This document shows, piece after piece, positions 30,566-40,092 of a stretch of DNA of 64,000 bases. How positions within the stretch are numbered: the stretch's first letter is position 1; each line of letters opens with the position of its first letter. This DNA is from Adineta vaga (taxonomy: Eukaryota > Animalia > Rotifera), in the NCBI GenBank assembly GCA_021613535.1, contig CP075492.1:15190001-15254000 (forward strand). Reading direction: 5' to 3'. A program made the translations under genes and the position numbers. The notes beneath the pieces are model-generated. The model searched no databases and was not told the DNA's origin. It was given only the letters and a program-made list of their open reading frames with translations.

Positions 30566-33422
30566 ATGCTACGGTTAATTTGGATTGCTAGTTGTAATTC
30601 AGCTACAGATCGTTCATCGACAGTCGACATAATAGAGATACAAAAGCGGTTGCAAGATGAAATTCAGCTTCCTCTTAGTTTCGACGATACACTTGATTGT
30701 TCGGTTACACTTCGGAGTTCCTTAACAAACACAGAGAAAAACATACTGATTATGCATATTGATCTCGTTCACGATATACTTCCTGAAGTTCATCACTTAT
30801 GCCATGTGATCTGTATTTTTGTCTACTTTAACGATTTAGAAAACGATCATAGTGAACAACGAATCACATACTGCGCAAATGAATATAAAAAAGTAAGTAT
30901 ATGAGTGACCATGGTTAAGTGTTATCAATCAGATAGACAATGTATAATACGCTTACAATAGAAAGTGCAAACGTTATTTCAACAATGAAATTATTATTGT
31001 TTAGCAGTAAAGTTGAGTCTGATACTATAGTATAAATATGTTTAGTTTGCCAGAAAACCGAATAGTCTTATTTCTTTTCTTGTTCTTATTTTGTTAACTT
31101 ATTTAAATTGTTCATCACCTTGGAAGACTAGCTTTTGGAAGACGAAAATAAGAATTATCATAGTTACTCGAGAGAATCTCACTATAAAGATATGAGTTTA
31201 TTTTACACTCACAAACTAATCCTACATCTATATTCTCACAGTTTGTTTTTTTCTGACAACTTTGGTTTACTTGATCCGATAAGTTTACTTATAACACTTA
31301 TTTATAGGTTATCATTGTCAACCAAAATAATTTAGTGGAACGTCTTAAAACATTTAATCGACGTTGGCATCAAAATTCTCAAGATTCATTTTCCTTATGT
31401 ATATCACATAGTGAAGAAGTAGATCACTCGGCTACAACAATCAATGGTGGTTTTGTTTTTTCTCAATTACTATTACATAGTCTCCTTCGAATGAAACCTT
31501 TGCCACATGACCGAGAGGAGTTTTGTACTCAATGCATGAAAATTTTTCAGAAAAACTATGAGCTCGAAAAGAATGAACTCAGATTTAAAACAATGCTGGA
31601 AGAGTTACGCAAATTTCAAGAGGATATTTACACGGATGATACTGTTTTAAGATGGTATACCATGGATTCTTTTCTTTATCGAATTATTAATGAAAGTTTA
31701 CGGGCTGATGATGTAGGAATATTATTTCACAGTCGTTTTGTTATCAGAGAATTGAATGAACAACTTATTAAGCGACAGTATAAATCACCGATTCGTGTCT
31801 ATAGAGGACAACGCATCTCAAATGATGAGGCTGAATTATTAGCAAAATCGATCGGACAACTCGTTAGTATGAAATCATTTTTGTCGACTAGTCTCGATCG
31901 AGGAATAGCAGAAATGTATGCTAATGTCGAAAACCAGACTACTAGCGAAGACGTAGCTTTTGTTATATTTATTATCGATGCGACTCCAAGTGAAAATAAT
32001 AGCGAATTTCGGCCCTTCGCGAATATTACTGATATTAGCCATTTTGGGACAAAAGAAAACGAAATACTTTTTATGTTAGGCTCAGTCTTCCGTATAACAA
32101 ATGTTGAACGCGATCTTAATCATCGATGGATTGTATCAATGACTGCTTGCGATCAAGAAGATATCGAATTAAATAGACTTTTTTCTGTTTTTGGAGATGG
32201 AGCAAAGATTAATGGATTAGATGATGATACATTTCACAATTTCGGAGTATTACTCATAGGCATGGGTATGCCTTATGAAGCAGAAAAGCTTTATCGTCAC
32301 ATGTTGGACGAATATAAATTGTTTCCACCAAACGATATTGTACTTGCGAGATGTTATTATATGTTAGGTAAAGCCGCGTTTGTTGCTGAACTAGCAGAAA
32401 GTACGAATTCTTGGTGGGAAAAACCAGCAAACTCTGAACAGTCATCTGATGATTATCATCTAAGAAGCGAACAAAGTAAGAAGATTCTTAGTGGACTTCA
32501 ATGGGCCAAATCAAAATTTTTCCCCCGTTCGAGAGAAACATCTGCAGAATCTTTTTCGAATCAATTCCGTCAAGACTCCCGTTTTCACAATGCTACAAAG
32601 CGTTTTGAACAAGCATTATTCTATATCAATAAAGCTTTACCATTTGATTATTTTTTAGCTGCTAATATATATCATTCCTTTGCAAATGTCTGTCGAGCTC
32701 TACGTGATTACAAAAATGCCTTACGAAATTATGAACAAGCACTTTCACACTGTAAAACATATTTTGGAGAAGAACATCGTTTGATAGCGGAAATATACAC
32801 TGATCTCGGTCGAATGTATTATGAAAAAAAACAATTGAATCAAGCTCTTGATTATTATACACGTGGTCTCACTGTAGCACAAAAAGTTTTACCTTCTACG
32901 CATCCAGAGATGGGAGTATTTCATACTGATATCGCTGTAATTTATTCTGAATTAGGAAAAATTGAAGAAGCGCAATTTCATTTTGAATCCATTGCCAGTA
33001 TAGACTTAATCTCATGTCAAAATACAAATTCACCACTCTCATCATATTACGAAGCCTTATATATATTCTACTCACACAAAAATACCATTCATCGCACGCC
33101 GATGACTCAAGTACCAAGTACGAAGCAGAATTCTTCTCAAAGAACTGGAATTATCTTTTATCGTTGTCCATGGTGTTATAGTTATGTTTGGATTTATAAA
33201 GCATTCTTCTTTTGCAAAGGATCTCCGTGTTTTCGATGTCTAAAACAATTGTTTACATTGCGACCACCTCTGATGAATCCAAGAGTCATGCAATACATAA
33301 AGTATCTTCATCATTATAATCGGTTTATGGAAGAGAAAGATCTTGATTATTTGCTCTCACGTGAATTACGACAGCAGTATCTACAATTGTCATCTGATAA
33401 GAATTCGTCTCTATCAAAATAA
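30566..33422 (+). CDS. NAD+:arginine ADP-ribosyltransferase (R-S-E class) plus TPR repeat protein, 2 exons, about 813 aa
   Basis: WYTMDSFLYRIINESLR, VYRGQ, FLSTS and ENEIL motifs; TPRs (ALRNYEQAL...HRLIAEIYTDLG). Phase-0 intron at 30893-31307. Confidence 0.9.
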
Positions 33423-34001
33423 CCTAGAGTTTTTATTTTCTACTTCTTCTGTACTTATTTCTTGGTAGTAGATTCTGAGTAGAAAGACGTGAAAGCTACT
33501 CAAATTCACATAAAAAATATTGACAAATTTTTTTTTCTAAAAGTAAAAGATCTTATATTCTATTATAGTCTCTACGATACCAGTTTCGCATCTCCTATAT
33601 TCAATTATCAAATGCAGCAAATTATATGAAAATGGAAAATGTTGTGATATACATCGATTTATTCTATTCAGTTAAAACAAAATATAAGTCACTATGAGTA
33701 CAATCCAATGCACTTTTTCATTTAAAAAGAATGGAATGAAGAAAAAAAATGTTTTTCTATATCGTCGACAACCGTTATTTTTCTCTTTCGGAAAACATTG
33801 CTGTATATGACGACCTATTGTTTCTTTCCGAGTGACGTTACTCACTATTTCCAGTGATTTACCAGAGAAGTATATGATGTGTGTGTTCATTATGCGACTC
33901 GTTCTCCTCTAGGTTGATAAGGACAGAAAGAAAAATAACTGTCACTATCAGAAGAAACAATTAATAGTCGTCGTAGATACATTTTTTTATTCTGAAATAT
34001 T

Positions 34002-34645
34002 ATGGGTTGTTCAAATTCAAAAACAGTTGATAGTCTAAATTCACCTGATTTAGGTATTGGAAGTCTTAAGGAAAGTTTATTTGAAAGACTTTTTAATACT
34101 GAAACAATCAAAGAATTAAGTAAAAATGCATTTGTAAGGTGAGTTACATTATAATTTTGTTTTTGTAAATTATAATTTCAATTGTATTTCATGTTCGTTT
34201 TAGCGTTCTCAATAAATATCCAGAAGCGAAGAAAATTTTCAATGTTCCGGAAACTACAAAAACTAACAGCGAATTACTTGGTACAAAAGAAGTACAAGTG
34301 GCTAGTGATAAGCTTTTAAATCACTATATTGATATTATAAAAACTACGGATAGTAATGTTGATTCAACAGTACAGAAAAAAGCTGAAGAGCTCAACAAAC
34401 TCGGCGTCAAAGCAGAATATATAAAAGTATTCTTCTTCGCCGGAAATTTTTAGGTGATAATTAAGATTGAAAATGAATTTTTTTTTCTCGTGTAGTGTTA
34501 TGGTGAGAATCTTGCTCAAAATGCTGTTAAAGATCTCGGCGACCAATTGAGTTTAACTGAAGAAAAAACTTTGAAAACAGTTACCAATGAGATTACAAAT
34601 CAACTGACAACTGAAATGGCCAAATTACCTGAATCATCATCGTAG
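34002..34645 (+). CDS. Globin-fold protein A, MGC N-terminus, lacking His E7 and F8; exons 34002-34138, 34204-34426, 34496-34645
   Basis: Spliced ORF MGCSNSK...AFV|SVLNKYPEAKKIF...EVQVASDKLLNHY...KKAEELNKLGVKAEYIK|CYGENL...EEKTLKTV. Intron phases are 2 and 0; the middle exon is 223 nt. Confidence 0.8.
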
Positions 34646-35132
34646 TTCGGAACATAAAATGTCTATAAAGAGATATGTTCAATATCTTGTTTATAATAAA
34701 AATCACCTTTAAACAAAATAAAAGTATATTCATTTCTCTGTTGTTACAATGTTAGGATTCCAATTATATTATATTGATTATTCTTCTCTGTTTTGCGTCT
34801 TAAATAAAAAGGGTACATTTGCATGATTCTAAAAACAATTGAAATTGTAAATGAAGAAAAATGTGTACAAACAATTCTTTCCCCGTTGTCAACCATTGCA
34901 TATTGAATCATCTTGTTTCTTTTCAAACAACGACGCTCACATTCTAAAGTGATTTATGAAAGATGTATGCCGTCTATTTACTATTACTCGGTCATTTTTT
35001 CTCGAATTTCTCTTTATGCTCTTGAAAGCAGAGAAGAGAAAAACAATCAAGAATAAGTTTTATTATTGTGAAAAAGTAGCAGTTGCATACACTGTTTGAT
35101 TGTCGTAGAGAAAAAAAGTCATATTCGTGATC

Positions 35133-35750
35133 ATGGGTTGTTCAGATTCAAAATCGATTAATACTATAAAAGAATCTCAGTCGAATGCTACAACGTTCAA
35201 GGAGAAATTGACAGAAAGACTTCTTAATGCTGATTTAGTTAAAGGAATGAGCAAAAAAGCGTTTGTTAGGTAACTCACCTATTCCTTTCACTCAGCGTGT
35301 AAAATCTAATCTATATACTTCTACTCTTTAGTGTTCTCAATAAGTATCCAGAAGCAAAGAAAGTTTTCAAAGTTCCTGAAACTACGAAGACAGATGCCGA
35401 GTTGGTTGATACAAAAGAAGTACAAGCAGCTAGTGACAAACTTTTAAATCATTATATGGACATTGTCAAAACTTCGGATGATAATCTTGATGCAGCGATG
35501 CGAAAAAAAGCCGATGAATTGAACAAACTTGGTGTCAAAGCAGAATATGTTAAGGTAAGTGCATCAACAACAATCGAAGATATAAATGTTGTGATTTTTT
35601 CTCTCGTAGTGTTATGGTGAAAATCTTGCACAAAATGCGGCAAAAGATACCGACAACAAACTGAGCACAACTGAAGAAAAAGCCTGGAAAGCAGTTATTA
35701 ATGAAATAACAGCTAAACTTACTGCTGCAATGGCTAAAGTAACAAACTGA
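35133..35750 (+). CDS. Globin-fold protein B, tandem paralog, lacking His E7 and F8; exons 35133-35269, 35332-35554, 35610-35750
   Basis: MGCSDSK...AFV|SVLNKYPEAKKVF...EVQAASDKLLNHY...KKADELNKLGVKAEYVK|CYGENL...EEKAWKAVINEI (H8 Trp retained). Confidence 0.85.
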
Positions 35751-37696
35751 TCTTCATCAATCTTAGAATATATAAATTACATTCGATTTTTTTGACGAGA
35801 ATGATTTGAATAGTTCAAATTACATCGATATTTGTATTTTCAATTTCTAATTTTCTAGTGGCCAACATGCACACCTATATCCTTAGATAGAAAAATAATA
35901 AATTATTTGATAAAATAATTGCAAGACAGAAAAACTTTTTTAATCACATAAACTAAAATTAAAAACAACTAAAATAGTCTACTTAATTAAAACTATTTTG
36001 ATAATATAGGTCATAGAGCGTGTATGTCATCAGCTCTACTATTAATATAAAGAAAAATCAATAAGATATTCAACTGTTCAATCGAAAATAATGTCACCAC
36101 TTGGCAATAGTAAATAATATCAATAAACTTGCATTGGGCATCTATTTCATCTTGTTTTTGTCGTTGAATAGCACTTAGCGAAGAAATATTTGTGGACAAC
36201 ATTCTCTGAAATCCTATAGTTTGGTCTTCGTTGATTTTTCGTTGTTAGATACAATCTAAAATCCGATAAAGGAAATTATTAAGGAAAGGTGCTGTAGAAG
36301 ATTTAGTTGTCAAATGATAACTTGAAATAGGCTAATTGACAAGAGAGCCTCTGATGAGGGTGTGGGTGAGGGTGTACATGGTAACATATGACTCAATATT
36401 AGATAAAAGCTGTGTAATGATAGTAAATATCGACATGCCTATTTTCGGCTCTGTTCTGCTCTTGAAAAGTGACTTTTAGTCATACAAACCCTCATGTAGT
36501 ATATGCATCAACGATTTTAATCTAATATGTAGATAAACTTACCATTTTTGAAAAACGTTGATCACAAAATGCATAGATATATGATAAAAGGAAATTTGCT
36601 GATTGATTGATACAAATATAACAGTTATTGATATTCGTAGCAGTATTTGATCTGAATAAAGTTCTCTCGTTGGTTTCGAATCACATTTATCTAATGTAGC
36701 AAATTGTTGCGTCAATGACTTGCGTATAGAAAAAAATTGAAATAAACTGAACATTCTACCATTGATCATCATTTGATCTGCCTTTGAAATCTATTGAAAA
36801 GAAAATGATGGTATAATAAAGTAGCATATTCGATGACATTGAATGTGTGTCATATATTTCCAAAAATAACCAACATCAGATATAGGTATGTACAGTAAAT
36901 TGTAATGAATACTGTTCATTTTTGGTAAATGTATTCAACAGAGTTGTACATTCGAGGTGAGTCAAATGAAAGACTTCGAACATCTTTAGAAAGTCTGAAA
37001 GTGTTGTCAAGTCATCATCATCATCATCTCTATCATTGCTACGATGATGACGTAACGAAAAAAAGTTGTCTTTTTTATTTAGGAAACACAATAATTATCG
37101 GTAGCAGCGTATATATAACAATCAATTCGTTATCTTTGAATGTAGGTCTCTCCGAGAGACTCGTTCATTGGAGAATGCATAGTTGAATCACTAAACTACA
37201 TCCACTAAATTAACTATAGATAAGGTTGATAATATCGTCCTGCATTGAGATGCTTAAACAGATAGTTAATTGTACTTGTCGATACGGGTGTATCATAGGA
37301 ATAAATCTTCAAGATTATTATATCTAACAATATCAGATCAAACGTGTCTAGTTTAATCACAGAGTTCGGTTTCTTTCTTGTTATTATTTAATTGTGGTAA
37401 CAGATGTGCATTAAATCTATGAATCACTCTCTTCTCACCTTTATAGGGAGAAAAAAAAAATTTTCTCCCACATTTTAACTATGTAAGCAGTGTTTTTTTT
37501 CTCGTTGACGGGAGATATTGTCATACATGTGCATGATTCTTTTTCAAATGACTCAAAGAGACGCGCATGTCTTTGCTTTTACGTAAATACTATTGTCAAT
37601 GTTGTTCTTGAATACAGTTATTCACTCAATAACTCATATATATATATATAGGACAAATACATTTTCACACTGCAGAAAAGTTTCTTTTCTTCGATA

Positions 37697-39168
37697 ATGT
37701 CTAGTGAAAAATGTCGTCTTGTATGGGAAGATAATTTCTCCCAAAACGGCCCTGTCGATCGAAACAAATGGGATTTTGACATTGGTACTGGAAACGATGG
37801 ATGGGGTGAGAACTATATTCATCCATCATCTTATATATTCATTTATGAGCTGATATAAAATTTCTTAGGCAATCAAGAAGCACAATTTTACACTGATCGA
37901 ATTCAAAATGTTCGATGTGAAAATCAACGACTGATTATAGAAGCACATCGCGAATATTTCCAAGGTCAACAATTCACATCAGCTCGACTAAAATCAAAAT
38001 GTTCTTGGACTTATGGACGTCTACAAGTACATTTTCTAACCTCGTTTTCTTTTCATTTTCTTTCTTTTTTCTCTAGACAAAAGCAAAACTACCATCTGGT
38101 CGAGGTCTTTGGTCAGCCATTTGGATGGTGAGTATGTCTTCATTCGACCATGTGTTGCTTTATCATACCATAAGTATTTAGCTTCCTCAAATCAAATCCT
38201 ATGGAAATTCATATTGGCCTGATAATGGAGAAATTGATATTATGGAACAAGTGGGTTATGATCCAACTAAAATTGTTTCCAGTGTACATACAGCTGCATT
38301 CAATCACATGAAACATACACAACCTACAAATGGTGTCCATGTTTCTGATGCTTGCACTGATTTCAAAATCTACACTTTGAATTGGACTGCGAATCGACTA
38401 GAAATGTTTGTTGGTCATGATTCTAATCCATTCGAACAAAGAATTCTTGTTTGGGACAAAGGTAATCACGGGTGGGAAGGATGGTAAGATTTGAGAGATT
38501 TTACCAATCTGTTATGTTCATTGATTGATATCTCTGACAGGCCATTTGATAAGAACTTTTTCATCGTTCTGAATATTGCAGTCGGTGGTTCTTGGTAGGT
38601 ATAATCATATGATTCTTTGATAAATGTGAAAACTATGATTATATTGTCTTCTTGTAGGGGAGGACAACATGGTATTGATGAAGACATCTTTCCGAAAAGA
38701 ATGGAAGTTGAATGGATTCGATTTTATGAAATGTCCACTGGAAATAGTGAGATAAGTAGAACGCCTACACCTACTGCCAAAGTTGTTGCACTTCGATCGA
38801 ATGCTAATGGTAACTTCGTTTGTGCTGATAACTTCGGGAACAGTTCTCTGATTGCGAATCGGAAAACTGTTTCCGATTGGGAAAAGTTCGATCTTATTGC
38901 TCTTGGTGGAAAGAATATTGCGCTAAGATCACATGCAAATGGACGATATGTTTGTGCTGAAAATAGTGGAAACGATCCCTTGATTGGTAATCGAACTTTC
39001 GTAGGATCATGGGAAACGTTTCAAATGGTTAATTGTGGTGATGGAAAAGTCGGTTTTATTGCAGTGAATGGAAAGTATGTCTGTGCTGATAATTTTGGAA
39101 ACGGTCCACTTATTGCAAATCGCAACACTTTAGATGGTTGGGAGACATTTGATTTAATACATTACTAA
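37697..39168 (+). CDS. GH16 beta-1,3-glucanase (laminarinase-type) plus fascin-like beta-trefoil domain, 6 exons
   Basis: LVWEDNF, GWGNQEAQFYT, FTSARL, GLWSAIWM, catalytic GEIDIME, and PFDKNFFIVLNIAVGG. C-terminal ALRS.ANG.YVCA repeats with WETF. Confidence 0.9.
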
Positions 39169-39328: not shown

Positions 39329-40092
39329 ATGTCCGTTTATACTGTTGAATCGGGTGATACTTTATGGGGAATTTCGAAAAAAATTGGATGCACTCTCGAA
39401 GCCATCGTAAGCGCTAATCCAGGCGTTGTTCCAGAACAACTTCAAATTGGGCAAGTCATACGATTACCTGGAGGACCATCGAACTCATCTCAAAACACAT
39501 CTCCAAATGGACGACTTGATACAACATTGAATTCGAAAGTGCCTCTTTGGCTTGAAAAACTTCGCAACGCAATCAATGCAGCATCCAAGCAACCAATGTT
39601 CCGGCTGATTTAATTGCTGCCGTCATTTATCAAGAATCTGGTGGCGATCCAAACGTACAAACATGGAATCCAAATGGTGGTGCTGATTCAAGTCTAATGC
39701 AAGTCAATCAATATACAGCAGATGAACTGGAAAGAAAATACCCTGACCGATTCAGAAATGTGTATGGTCTTAGTAAAAATGTGATGTTAGGTGCTAGTTA
39801 TCTCCGAGATATGTACGATACAGTCGGCGATCGTAGTTGGGGTATAACTCTTCGTGCATACAATTCAGGTCCGAATGGTATTGATAAGAATAACTTACGT
39901 GCAACACCAGCTGGTACGGGCGATAGAACATATGTCGATAAAGTACTTCGATTCTGGAGTGACATATCAGAAGGTAGAGATCTTCCAGTCGATCATTATG
40001 AATCCACTTTGGGCGAGGATTTTGATTATTCCATGATACATCTACTCGAACAGTTTAAATACTCAAACACTCCTTTTATTTATTTTATTTAA
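39329..40092 (+). CDS. LysM plus soluble lytic transglycosylase (SLT/GH23) fusion; apparent frameshift at about 39587
   Basis: YTVESGDTLWGIS...ANPG...LQIGQVIRLP (LysM). LIAAVIYQESGG, SLMQV, GASYL and AYNSG...YVDKV (SLT motifs) lie in the next frame. Confidence 0.85.

Follow-up and report, generated by a model that had tools for sequence, protein, structure and literature searches.

Tandem globin genes of the bdelloid rotifer Adineta vaga encode proteins with an acylation motif and no histidine at the heme-ligating positions

Tandem three-exon genes and their globin identity

The window analyzed here is a 64,000-nt stretch of the Adineta vaga genome (C3:15190001-15254000; the host genome comprises 100.8 Mb in six pieces). 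It carries a tandem pair of three-exon genes, gene A at 34002-34645 (169 amino acids) and gene B at 35133-35750 (166 amino acids), whose products are globins with no His at either of the classical heme-ligating positions (Table 1). Both proteins open with MGCSxSK. The four introns, 55-69 nt in length, all have GT..AG borders; intron 1 of each gene is in phase 2 and intron 2 in phase 0. Start codons were fixed by an in-frame stop that lies immediately upstream of each ATG. Transcript contigs from four public RNA runs (three studies) covered both genes, with the four introns removed exactly at the modeled boundaries; the junction 34138/34204 of gene A, for example, was seen in contigs of four runs. 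Being assembled contigs, these data speak to presence and splicing, not to expression level. A first-pass annotation of this DNA, made by a model from the letters, had described two intact three-exon genes with MGCSxSK starts, phase 2 and phase 0 introns and a 223-nt middle exon. The sequence and the contigs of four runs bear out this description, and the transcripts carry the predicted junctions.

The spliced product of gene B is identical to the A. vaga NCBI protein I4U23_015801 (P0001 in our numbering). By contrast with our model, the deposited gene A model, I4U23_015800 (P0030, 128 amino acids), does not splice out intron 2 and has a C-terminus of read-through residues; the RNA contigs favor the 169-residue product. 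Homology searches used both genes exon by exon, gene B was also used at full length, as P0001, in homology and fold searches, and the spliced gene A protein was used in local translation, alignment, substitution analysis and tree building only.

Table 1. Features of the tandem globin genes and their upstream blocks, in window coordinates (UTR, untranslated region)
Feature	Position	Strand	Description
Gene A upstream block	33818..33873	+	TTGTTTCTTT, then AGTGATTTA starting 35 nt on; the first transcript contig begins about 25 nt downstream
Gene A transcript extent	33896..34797	+	Spliced contigs; UTRs of at least 106 nt (5') and about 150 nt (3')
Gene A exon 1	34002..34138	+	137 nt; MGCSNSK acylation motif, variable linker, helix A, start of helix B; ends in phase 2, B12.2
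Gene A intron 1	34139..34203	+	65 nt, GT..AG, phase 2; removed in contigs of four runs
Gene A exon 2	34204..34426	+	223 nt; helices B to G6; E7 = Ala79, F8 = Glu108
Gene A intron 2	34427..34495	+	69 nt, GT..AG, phase 0, G7.0; removed in contigs of 4/4 runs
Gene A exon 3	34496..34645	+	150 nt; helices G7 to H and stop codon
Gene B upstream block	34913..34967	+	TTGTTTCTTT and AGTGATTTA at the same 35-nt spacing
Gene B transcript extent	35110..35895	+	Spliced contigs, separate from those of gene A
Gene B exon 1	35133..35269	+	137 nt; MGCSDSK, linker, helix A, start of helix B
Gene B intron 1	35270..35331	+	62 nt, GT..AG, phase 2; removed in contigs of three runs
Gene B exon 2	35332..35554	+	223 nt; Pfam Globin E = 0.0012 for the exon alone
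Gene B intron 2	35555..35609	+	55 nt, GT..AG, phase 0; removed in contigs of 4/4 runs
Gene B exon 3	35610..35750	+	141 nt and stop codon

Exon-by-exon searches of Pfam and the PDB were weak (exon 2 globin E = 0.001-0.03); exon 2 of gene A alone matched Pfam Globin with E = 0.03, and single exons stayed below the cut-off. The full-length record decided. P0001 matched Pfam PF00042 with 35.1 bits (E = 2.1e-8, profile positions 2-116 of 117) against a curated cut-off of 22 bits, and a third A. vaga paralogue, P0033, scored 27.1 bits. A single-sequence search of the PDB returned globins in 25 of 26 matches, with weak E-values. When a ten-member family profile was searched against the PDB, vertebrate beta-globins were recovered at E = 4.3e-8, and residues 24-157 of the family aligned to beta-globin 8-141 over 134 residues without a gap, at an offset of 16. 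A profile built from C-type members only (the subfamily of P0033) independently recovered beta-globins in the same register (E = 4.4e-5), and all 30 feature neighbors in the ESM Atlas were globin clusters.

Predicted structures pointed the same way. AlphaFold2 modeled gene B with a mean predicted local distance difference test (pLDDT) score of 82 and a predicted template modeling (pTM) score of 0.76, and the C-type paralogue with a pLDDT of 87 and a pTM of 0.79; both models showed the globin helix series, with seven to eight helices called. The top Foldseek matches to the predicted model were all animal globins (template modeling, TM, scores of 0.64-0.72). Using VIA-align, the eight-helix gene B model reached Z 15.4 to cytoglobin and Z ~15 also to haemoglobin beta and myoglobin. 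We also compared the C-type model exhaustively with 48,161 chains: human cytoglobin came first (Z 18.5, root mean square deviation (rmsd) 2.2 A, 147 residues), and the top 50 matches all belonged to the globin superfamily. The RsbR N-domain stood at rank 45 in this comparison (Z 10.9), behind animal, plant and bacterial heme globins. Overall, the predicted models superposed on heme globins with rmsd of 2.2-3.0 A, over 147-148 residues for cytoglobin. A shape search of the ESM Atlas returned RsbRD_N clusters first (TM 0.54-0.60) and no eukaryotic globin cluster. The globin fold that the first-pass annotation had proposed is thus recovered by profile search (PF00042) and by structure search (animal globins in Foldseek and VIA-align), and both the profiles and the predicted models identify the products of A and B as metazoan-type 3-on-3 globins.

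The gapless alignment also mapped both introns. Split codon 46 aligns to beta-globin codon 30, and the boundary 120/121 to codons 104/105, which we take to be the intron sites B12.2 and G7.0 of human beta-globin. By this alignment the introns sit at the classical B12.2 (phase 2) and G7.0 (phase 0) positions, in agreement with the gene structure assigned at first pass. The nomenclature and conservation of these two sites have been described (PMC7457136). The family is derived from an ordinary animal globin gene, whose ancestral introns it retains.

At an offset of 16 to beta-globin, the gene B map reads C2 = Pro52, CD1 = Phe58, E7 = Ala79, E14 = His86, E15 = Tyr87, F8 = Glu108, F9 = Leu109, FG5 = Val114, G4 = Tyr118 and G8 = Tyr122; at H8, copy B has Trp146 and copy A has Leu. 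The profile alignment agrees with the earlier assignment of Pro C2, Phe CD1, the G-helix Tyr and Trp H8 in copy B. The earlier pair of heme positions, Ala at E7 and Leu at F8, held in its first half only: the distal His63 (E7) of beta-globin aligns to Ala79, but two independent profile alignments pair beta-globin His92 with Glu108, so that F8 is Glu108 and the Leu named before, Leu109, is F9. CD1 remains aromatic (Phe58 against beta-globin Phe42; Tyr in the C type).

Among 15 family sequences, E7 is Ala, Pro or Leu (Pro in most C-type proteins, Leu in the D type), whereas the residues found at F8 are Glu, Asp, Gln and Val; no F helix contains a His, and no His column is conserved. The products of A and B have a single His each (residue 86, in an NHY on helix E) and Cys at 3 and 121 only, matching the one His per copy and the shared exon-3 Cys listed before. 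No alignment placed a His at F8, as had also been claimed, and the F helix holds no His, Cys or Tyr. In the A/B type the heme-facing positions form a charged turn, with Lys, Glu or Ser at F4, Asp or Glu at F7 and Glu at F8. Several distal positions are bulkier than in beta-globin: Phe at B10, Leu or Phe at E11, His or Trp at E14, and Tyr at E15 and G8.

One gene B contig, starting at 35110, carried 24 foreign bases joined just past a GTCGTAG acceptor-like site. These bases have no copy in the window and a single copy in the genome, at C4:6974241 on chromosome 4. A spliced leader was considered for this loose 5' end and set aside; the contig is probably an assembly chimera, a 5' exon or trans-splicing being less likely readings.

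The bdelloid family and the other globins of A. vaga

The family has three members in A. vaga: A, B and a C-type gene on chromosome 4 (C4:6337694-6338358; P0033, I4U23_019022), which encodes 176 amino acids, begins with MGCGSS and has exons of 155/223/153 nt. Exon 2 as a query recovered the rotifer family with E-values down to 1e-37. In database searches, relatives were found in bdelloids only, namely A. vaga, A. ricciae, A. steineri and Rotaria species (R. sordida, R. socialis and two further species), together with a few environmental fragments. An exhaustive profile search with exon 2 gave 25 matches and no intermediate relatives beyond the rotifer family; three long repetitive proteins among the 25 were taken as spurious. 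Two word-indexed profile searches, one of them run to E 10, added no canonical globins. Several members bear the automatic UniProt name "Globin domain-containing protein" and one is called "Hemoglobin".

Exon lengths are 137/223/138 nt in A. ricciae and 149/223/150 nt in A. steineri, with the same phases as in A. vaga, and the three Adineta species and the Rotaria orthologues all retain intact frames, splice sites and exon lengths. No tandem arrangement was found within 4 kb of the orthologues in A. ricciae or A. steineri. The family tree supported the A/B clade at 99/100 and did not resolve the order of duplication and speciation. Although the A/B and C types share only ~30% identity, Met1, Gly2, Cys3, Ser6 and about 25 domain positions are at least 90% identical, including Phe B10, Leu B14, a Lys-Tyr-Pro at the B/C junction, a Pro-Glu in the CD corner, Tyr E15, Lys-Ala at F5-F6, Leu F9, Tyr G8 and Trp H8. 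The pattern MGCxxS is present in 13 of 13 complete N-termini; the ~15 residues that follow are hypervariable, and the motif alone is fixed.

The C-type proteins have conserved His of their own at CD2 and G14, both remote from the iron sites, and in Adineta a Trp at E14. A divergent D-type subfamily (P0022, P0014-P0024; Rotaria and environmental fragments) has Val at F8 and Leu at E7. It was not found in A. vaga, where a genome search with P0022 gave the three known genes only.

We estimated the ratio of nonsynonymous to synonymous substitution rates (dN/dS) for the coding sequences. Between A and B, dN was 0.23 and dS 0.78-1.25, giving a dN/dS of 0.29 (95% bootstrap interval 0.17-0.49); comparison with the A. 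steineri orthologue gave 0.26-0.39, and the globin domain alone 0.20. None of 500 bootstrap replicates reached 1. Codon changes among transcript contig variants were seven synonymous and three nonsynonymous, and A and B are ~60% identical in their introns vs 74% in coding sequence. The substitution pattern, with dN/dS near 0.3, indicates that A and B are functional and under purifying selection, as the first-pass annotation had supposed for the two copies.

One survey (10.1101/789214) stated that no globin-related gene is identifiable in Adineta. This statement no longer holds, because the genome contains the present family, His-bearing globins and flavohemoglobin-like genes. The His-bearing globins are two paralogous genes with introns, L011 (1383-1857; C1 near 9485143) and L009 (C4 near 3061310), with the distal His in LRNHGSK, the proximal His in IGIHHKG and introns at B12.2 and G7.0; exon 1 of L009 and L011 was not found. 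A profile comparison between the family and exon 2 of L011 was insignificant (probability 7%), and on this result we rejected the idea that the family is a recent derivative of the L011 gene. The flavohemoglobin-like open reading frames (ORFs) number four; they are uninterrupted, run to ~400 amino acids and match Pfam Globin. L004, which was scanned in full, combines a Globin domain with an NAD-binding reductase domain and lies in tandem with L006 and L007 at C4 1539152-1545801, while L005 lies at C3 near 18778484 and L008 at C1 near 10335546. At one locus among L004-L008, a 136-residue Globin ORF adjoins a separate reductase-like ORF, as judged by eye. The intron-free form of the flavohemoglobin-like ORFs suggests a microbial origin.

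Proposed role, alternatives and comparison with known globins

We consider it rather probable that A and B are selected and expressed bdelloid globins that do not hold heme canonically, are anchored at membranes and use the globin fold as a heme-free module. Canonical heme ligation would have been lost by replacement of His E7 with Ala or Pro and of His F8 with Glu, Asp or Gln (Val in the Rotaria subfamily), and from these residues we infer proteins without canonical heme holding, which probably have a role other than oxygen transport or sensing. The family proteins would be myristoylated and palmitoylated and held on the cytoplasmic membrane face by this dual lipid anchor. In zebrafish globin X, G2A and C3S mutations abolish membrane localization (PMC3176823); by analogy, the rotifer proteins probably sit at membranes via a dual lipid anchor. 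There, the globin fold may serve as a heme-free binding or scaffolding module. By analogy with the bacterial non-heme globin sensors (PMC8717448), the most likely ligand would be a lipid or other hydrophobic molecule in the former heme pocket; alternatively, the pocket may hide the protein's own myristate.

Several findings weigh against this proposal. The AlphaFold2 model is holo-like and open, with no sign of a collapsed pocket, and hydrophobic pocket positions are kept (FG5 Val, G5 Val/Ile, G12 Leu and H19 Leu). Candidate iron ligands are conserved at Lys105 (F5), Tyr87 (E15), Tyr122 (G8) and Glu108 (F8). Furthermore, a dN/dS of 0.2-0.4 amounts to moderate constraint only, and to name a specific ligand or partner would be to guess from analogy.

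The conserved candidate ligands lead to an alternative, which we regard as unlikely: heme or another tetrapyrrole might be bound via Lys105, Glu108, Tyr87, Tyr122 or, in Adineta A and B, His86, in a membrane redox or heme-buffering role. Lys105, Tyr87 and Tyr122 vary little or not at all between subfamilies, CD1 Phe/Tyr is retained along with several hydrophobic pocket positions, and the predicted models superpose closely on heme globins. Redox N-acylated globins also exist, namely globin X and, in C. elegans, GLB-12 and GLB-26. However, no position keeps a conserved His, Cys or Met as a heme ligand, and in the A/B type the F-helix face that contacts heme (F4, F7, F8) carries charges. We know of no natural globin in which Lys, Glu or Tyr is the sole proximal ligand. 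The Trp at E14 of the Adineta C-type proteins also speaks against bound heme; in myoglobin, E14 is a small residue that touches the heme.

That the genes are decaying globin relics, transcribed without a selected function, is scarcely credible. Such decay would account for the loss of both function-defining globin residues, for a constraint that is moderate (dN/dS up to 0.39) and for the fast-evolving N-terminal linker. It does not fit frames, splice sites and exon lengths that are intact across three Adineta species and Rotaria, a dN/dS significantly below 1 (0/500 bootstraps at 1) at a dS of at least about 0.8, an acylation motif and ~25 positions kept at 90% or more against ~30% identity between subfamilies, or spliced transcripts in several studies. 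The acylation motif, for its part, was judged by pattern alone, and the MGC N-terminus could be unlipidated in vivo, which would make these proteins soluble, cytoplasmic and globin-folded. This we think improbable: Gly2, Cys3 and Ser6 stand in 13 of 13 N-termini while the next ~15 residues are hypervariable, the start codons are fixed by in-frame stops just upstream, and membrane binding of globin X needs the same Gly2/Cys3 pair (PMC3176823).

The membrane-anchored, heme-free reading also has a wider form, which is possible but doubtful. The rotifer proteins would be the first animal-derived family of heme-free globins: a membrane-anchored, globin X-like ancestor would have given up heme and persisted, dual-lipidated, over tens of millions of years, its pocket binding lipid or its own myristoyl group as a switch.

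Among known animal globins, globin X and the globin X-like proteins (GbXL) share with the rotifer family the Met-Gly-Cys motif (PMC3176823, PMC7457136) and the build of a single globin-domain protein of ~165-175 amino acids with a short N-terminal extension. GbXL genes typically have the three-exon B12.2/G7.0 structure, no E10.2 intron and dual acylation motifs (PMC7457136). The rotifer genes likewise have three exons, with B12.2 and G7.0 and without the E10.2 intron, a likeness of structure and motif. Unlike globin X, which is hexacoordinate through His E7 and His F8, the rotifer proteins have Ala or Pro at E7 and Glu at F8. The heme state of GbXL is that of globin X. The family shares with beta-globin, cytoglobin and myoglobin the intron positions and the 223-nt exon 2, these proteins are its best structural matches, and its profile alignment with beta-globin runs gapless from helix A to helix H. 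It differs from vertebrate globins in having 12-20% identity to them, no heme-ligating His and an N-terminal lipidation motif.

Animal globins without the heme-ligating His have been mentioned before, in passing, as single genes or as domains of larger proteins in arthropods. Puriana HbL2 has Met at CD1, Val at E7 and Val at F8 (PMC7457136); some Daphnia HbL proteins have Tyr or Val at F8, and hexapod androglobin is also His-less (PMC7457136). The authors suspected a non-respiratory function (PMC7457136). The rotifer proteins resemble these in the loss of the proximal His and of the distal His, the latter only sometimes lost in arthropods. They differ in forming a multi-gene family over two bdelloid genera, with an acylation motif, an aromatic CD1 and measured selection and expression. 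Given the arthropod cases, a His-less animal globin is not a categorically new idea. We found no paper in the literature that describes this rotifer family; even so, the first-pass suggestion of an undescribed animal globin class was too strong in view of the UniProt globin labels and the arthropod examples (PMC7457136).

Heme-free sensing is a feature of the RsbR type and serves here as a working analogy. The RsbR N-terminal domain and the B. anthracis sporulation sensor domains are cited as bacterial non-heme globins (PMC8717448, PMC7475203), and an RsbR-type non-heme globin sensor binds fatty acid (PMC8717448). The accepted non-heme globin families, that is, the RsbR type, phycobiliproteins and photoglobin, are bacterial or algal (PMC8717448). 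Like the RsbR type, the rotifer proteins have a globin fold without distal and proximal His. Unlike it, they have metazoan introns, and their models lie nearer animal heme globins (Z 18.5 vs 10.9). On the sequence profiles these proteins are animal globins, and the predicted models indicate no specific relationship to RsbR-type domains.

Globins are a textbook fold defined by its cofactor. If the heme-free reading is true, the rotifer genes would form a conserved, expressed and selected animal family that is collinear with beta-globin down to its introns, with both heme His gone and the membrane motif kept, and would show how an animal globin is repurposed after heme loss. Such a family would in turn matter for the proposal of membrane attachment as an ancient globin property (PMC7457136). 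The two paralogues, together with a canonical globin in the same genome, offer a ready system for heme-binding assays.

Upstream block and window neighbors

Genes A and B share an upstream block 150-200 nt before the ATG, in which CTCAC lies between the two elements listed in Table 1. Both elements also occur upstream of the A. steineri orthologue. We read the shared block as a probable promoter element retained in both copies.

Directly upstream of gene A, at 31335-33422, lies a 695-residue ORF with a weak ADP-ribosyltransferase (ART) exoenzyme-type domain and TPR repeats. Further downstream, a 183-residue ORF at 38617-39168 contains DUF7910 together with fascin-like repeats, and a LysM ORF at 39329-39613 (E = 4e-14) is adjacent to a lytic transglycosylase SLT ORF at 39697-40092 (E = 9e-9). 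The LysM and SLT ORFs represent a bacterial-type toolkit for peptidoglycan inside an animal genome and are candidates for horizontal transfer. The ART-TPR and LysM/transglycosylase neighbors fit a bdelloid origin of the window.

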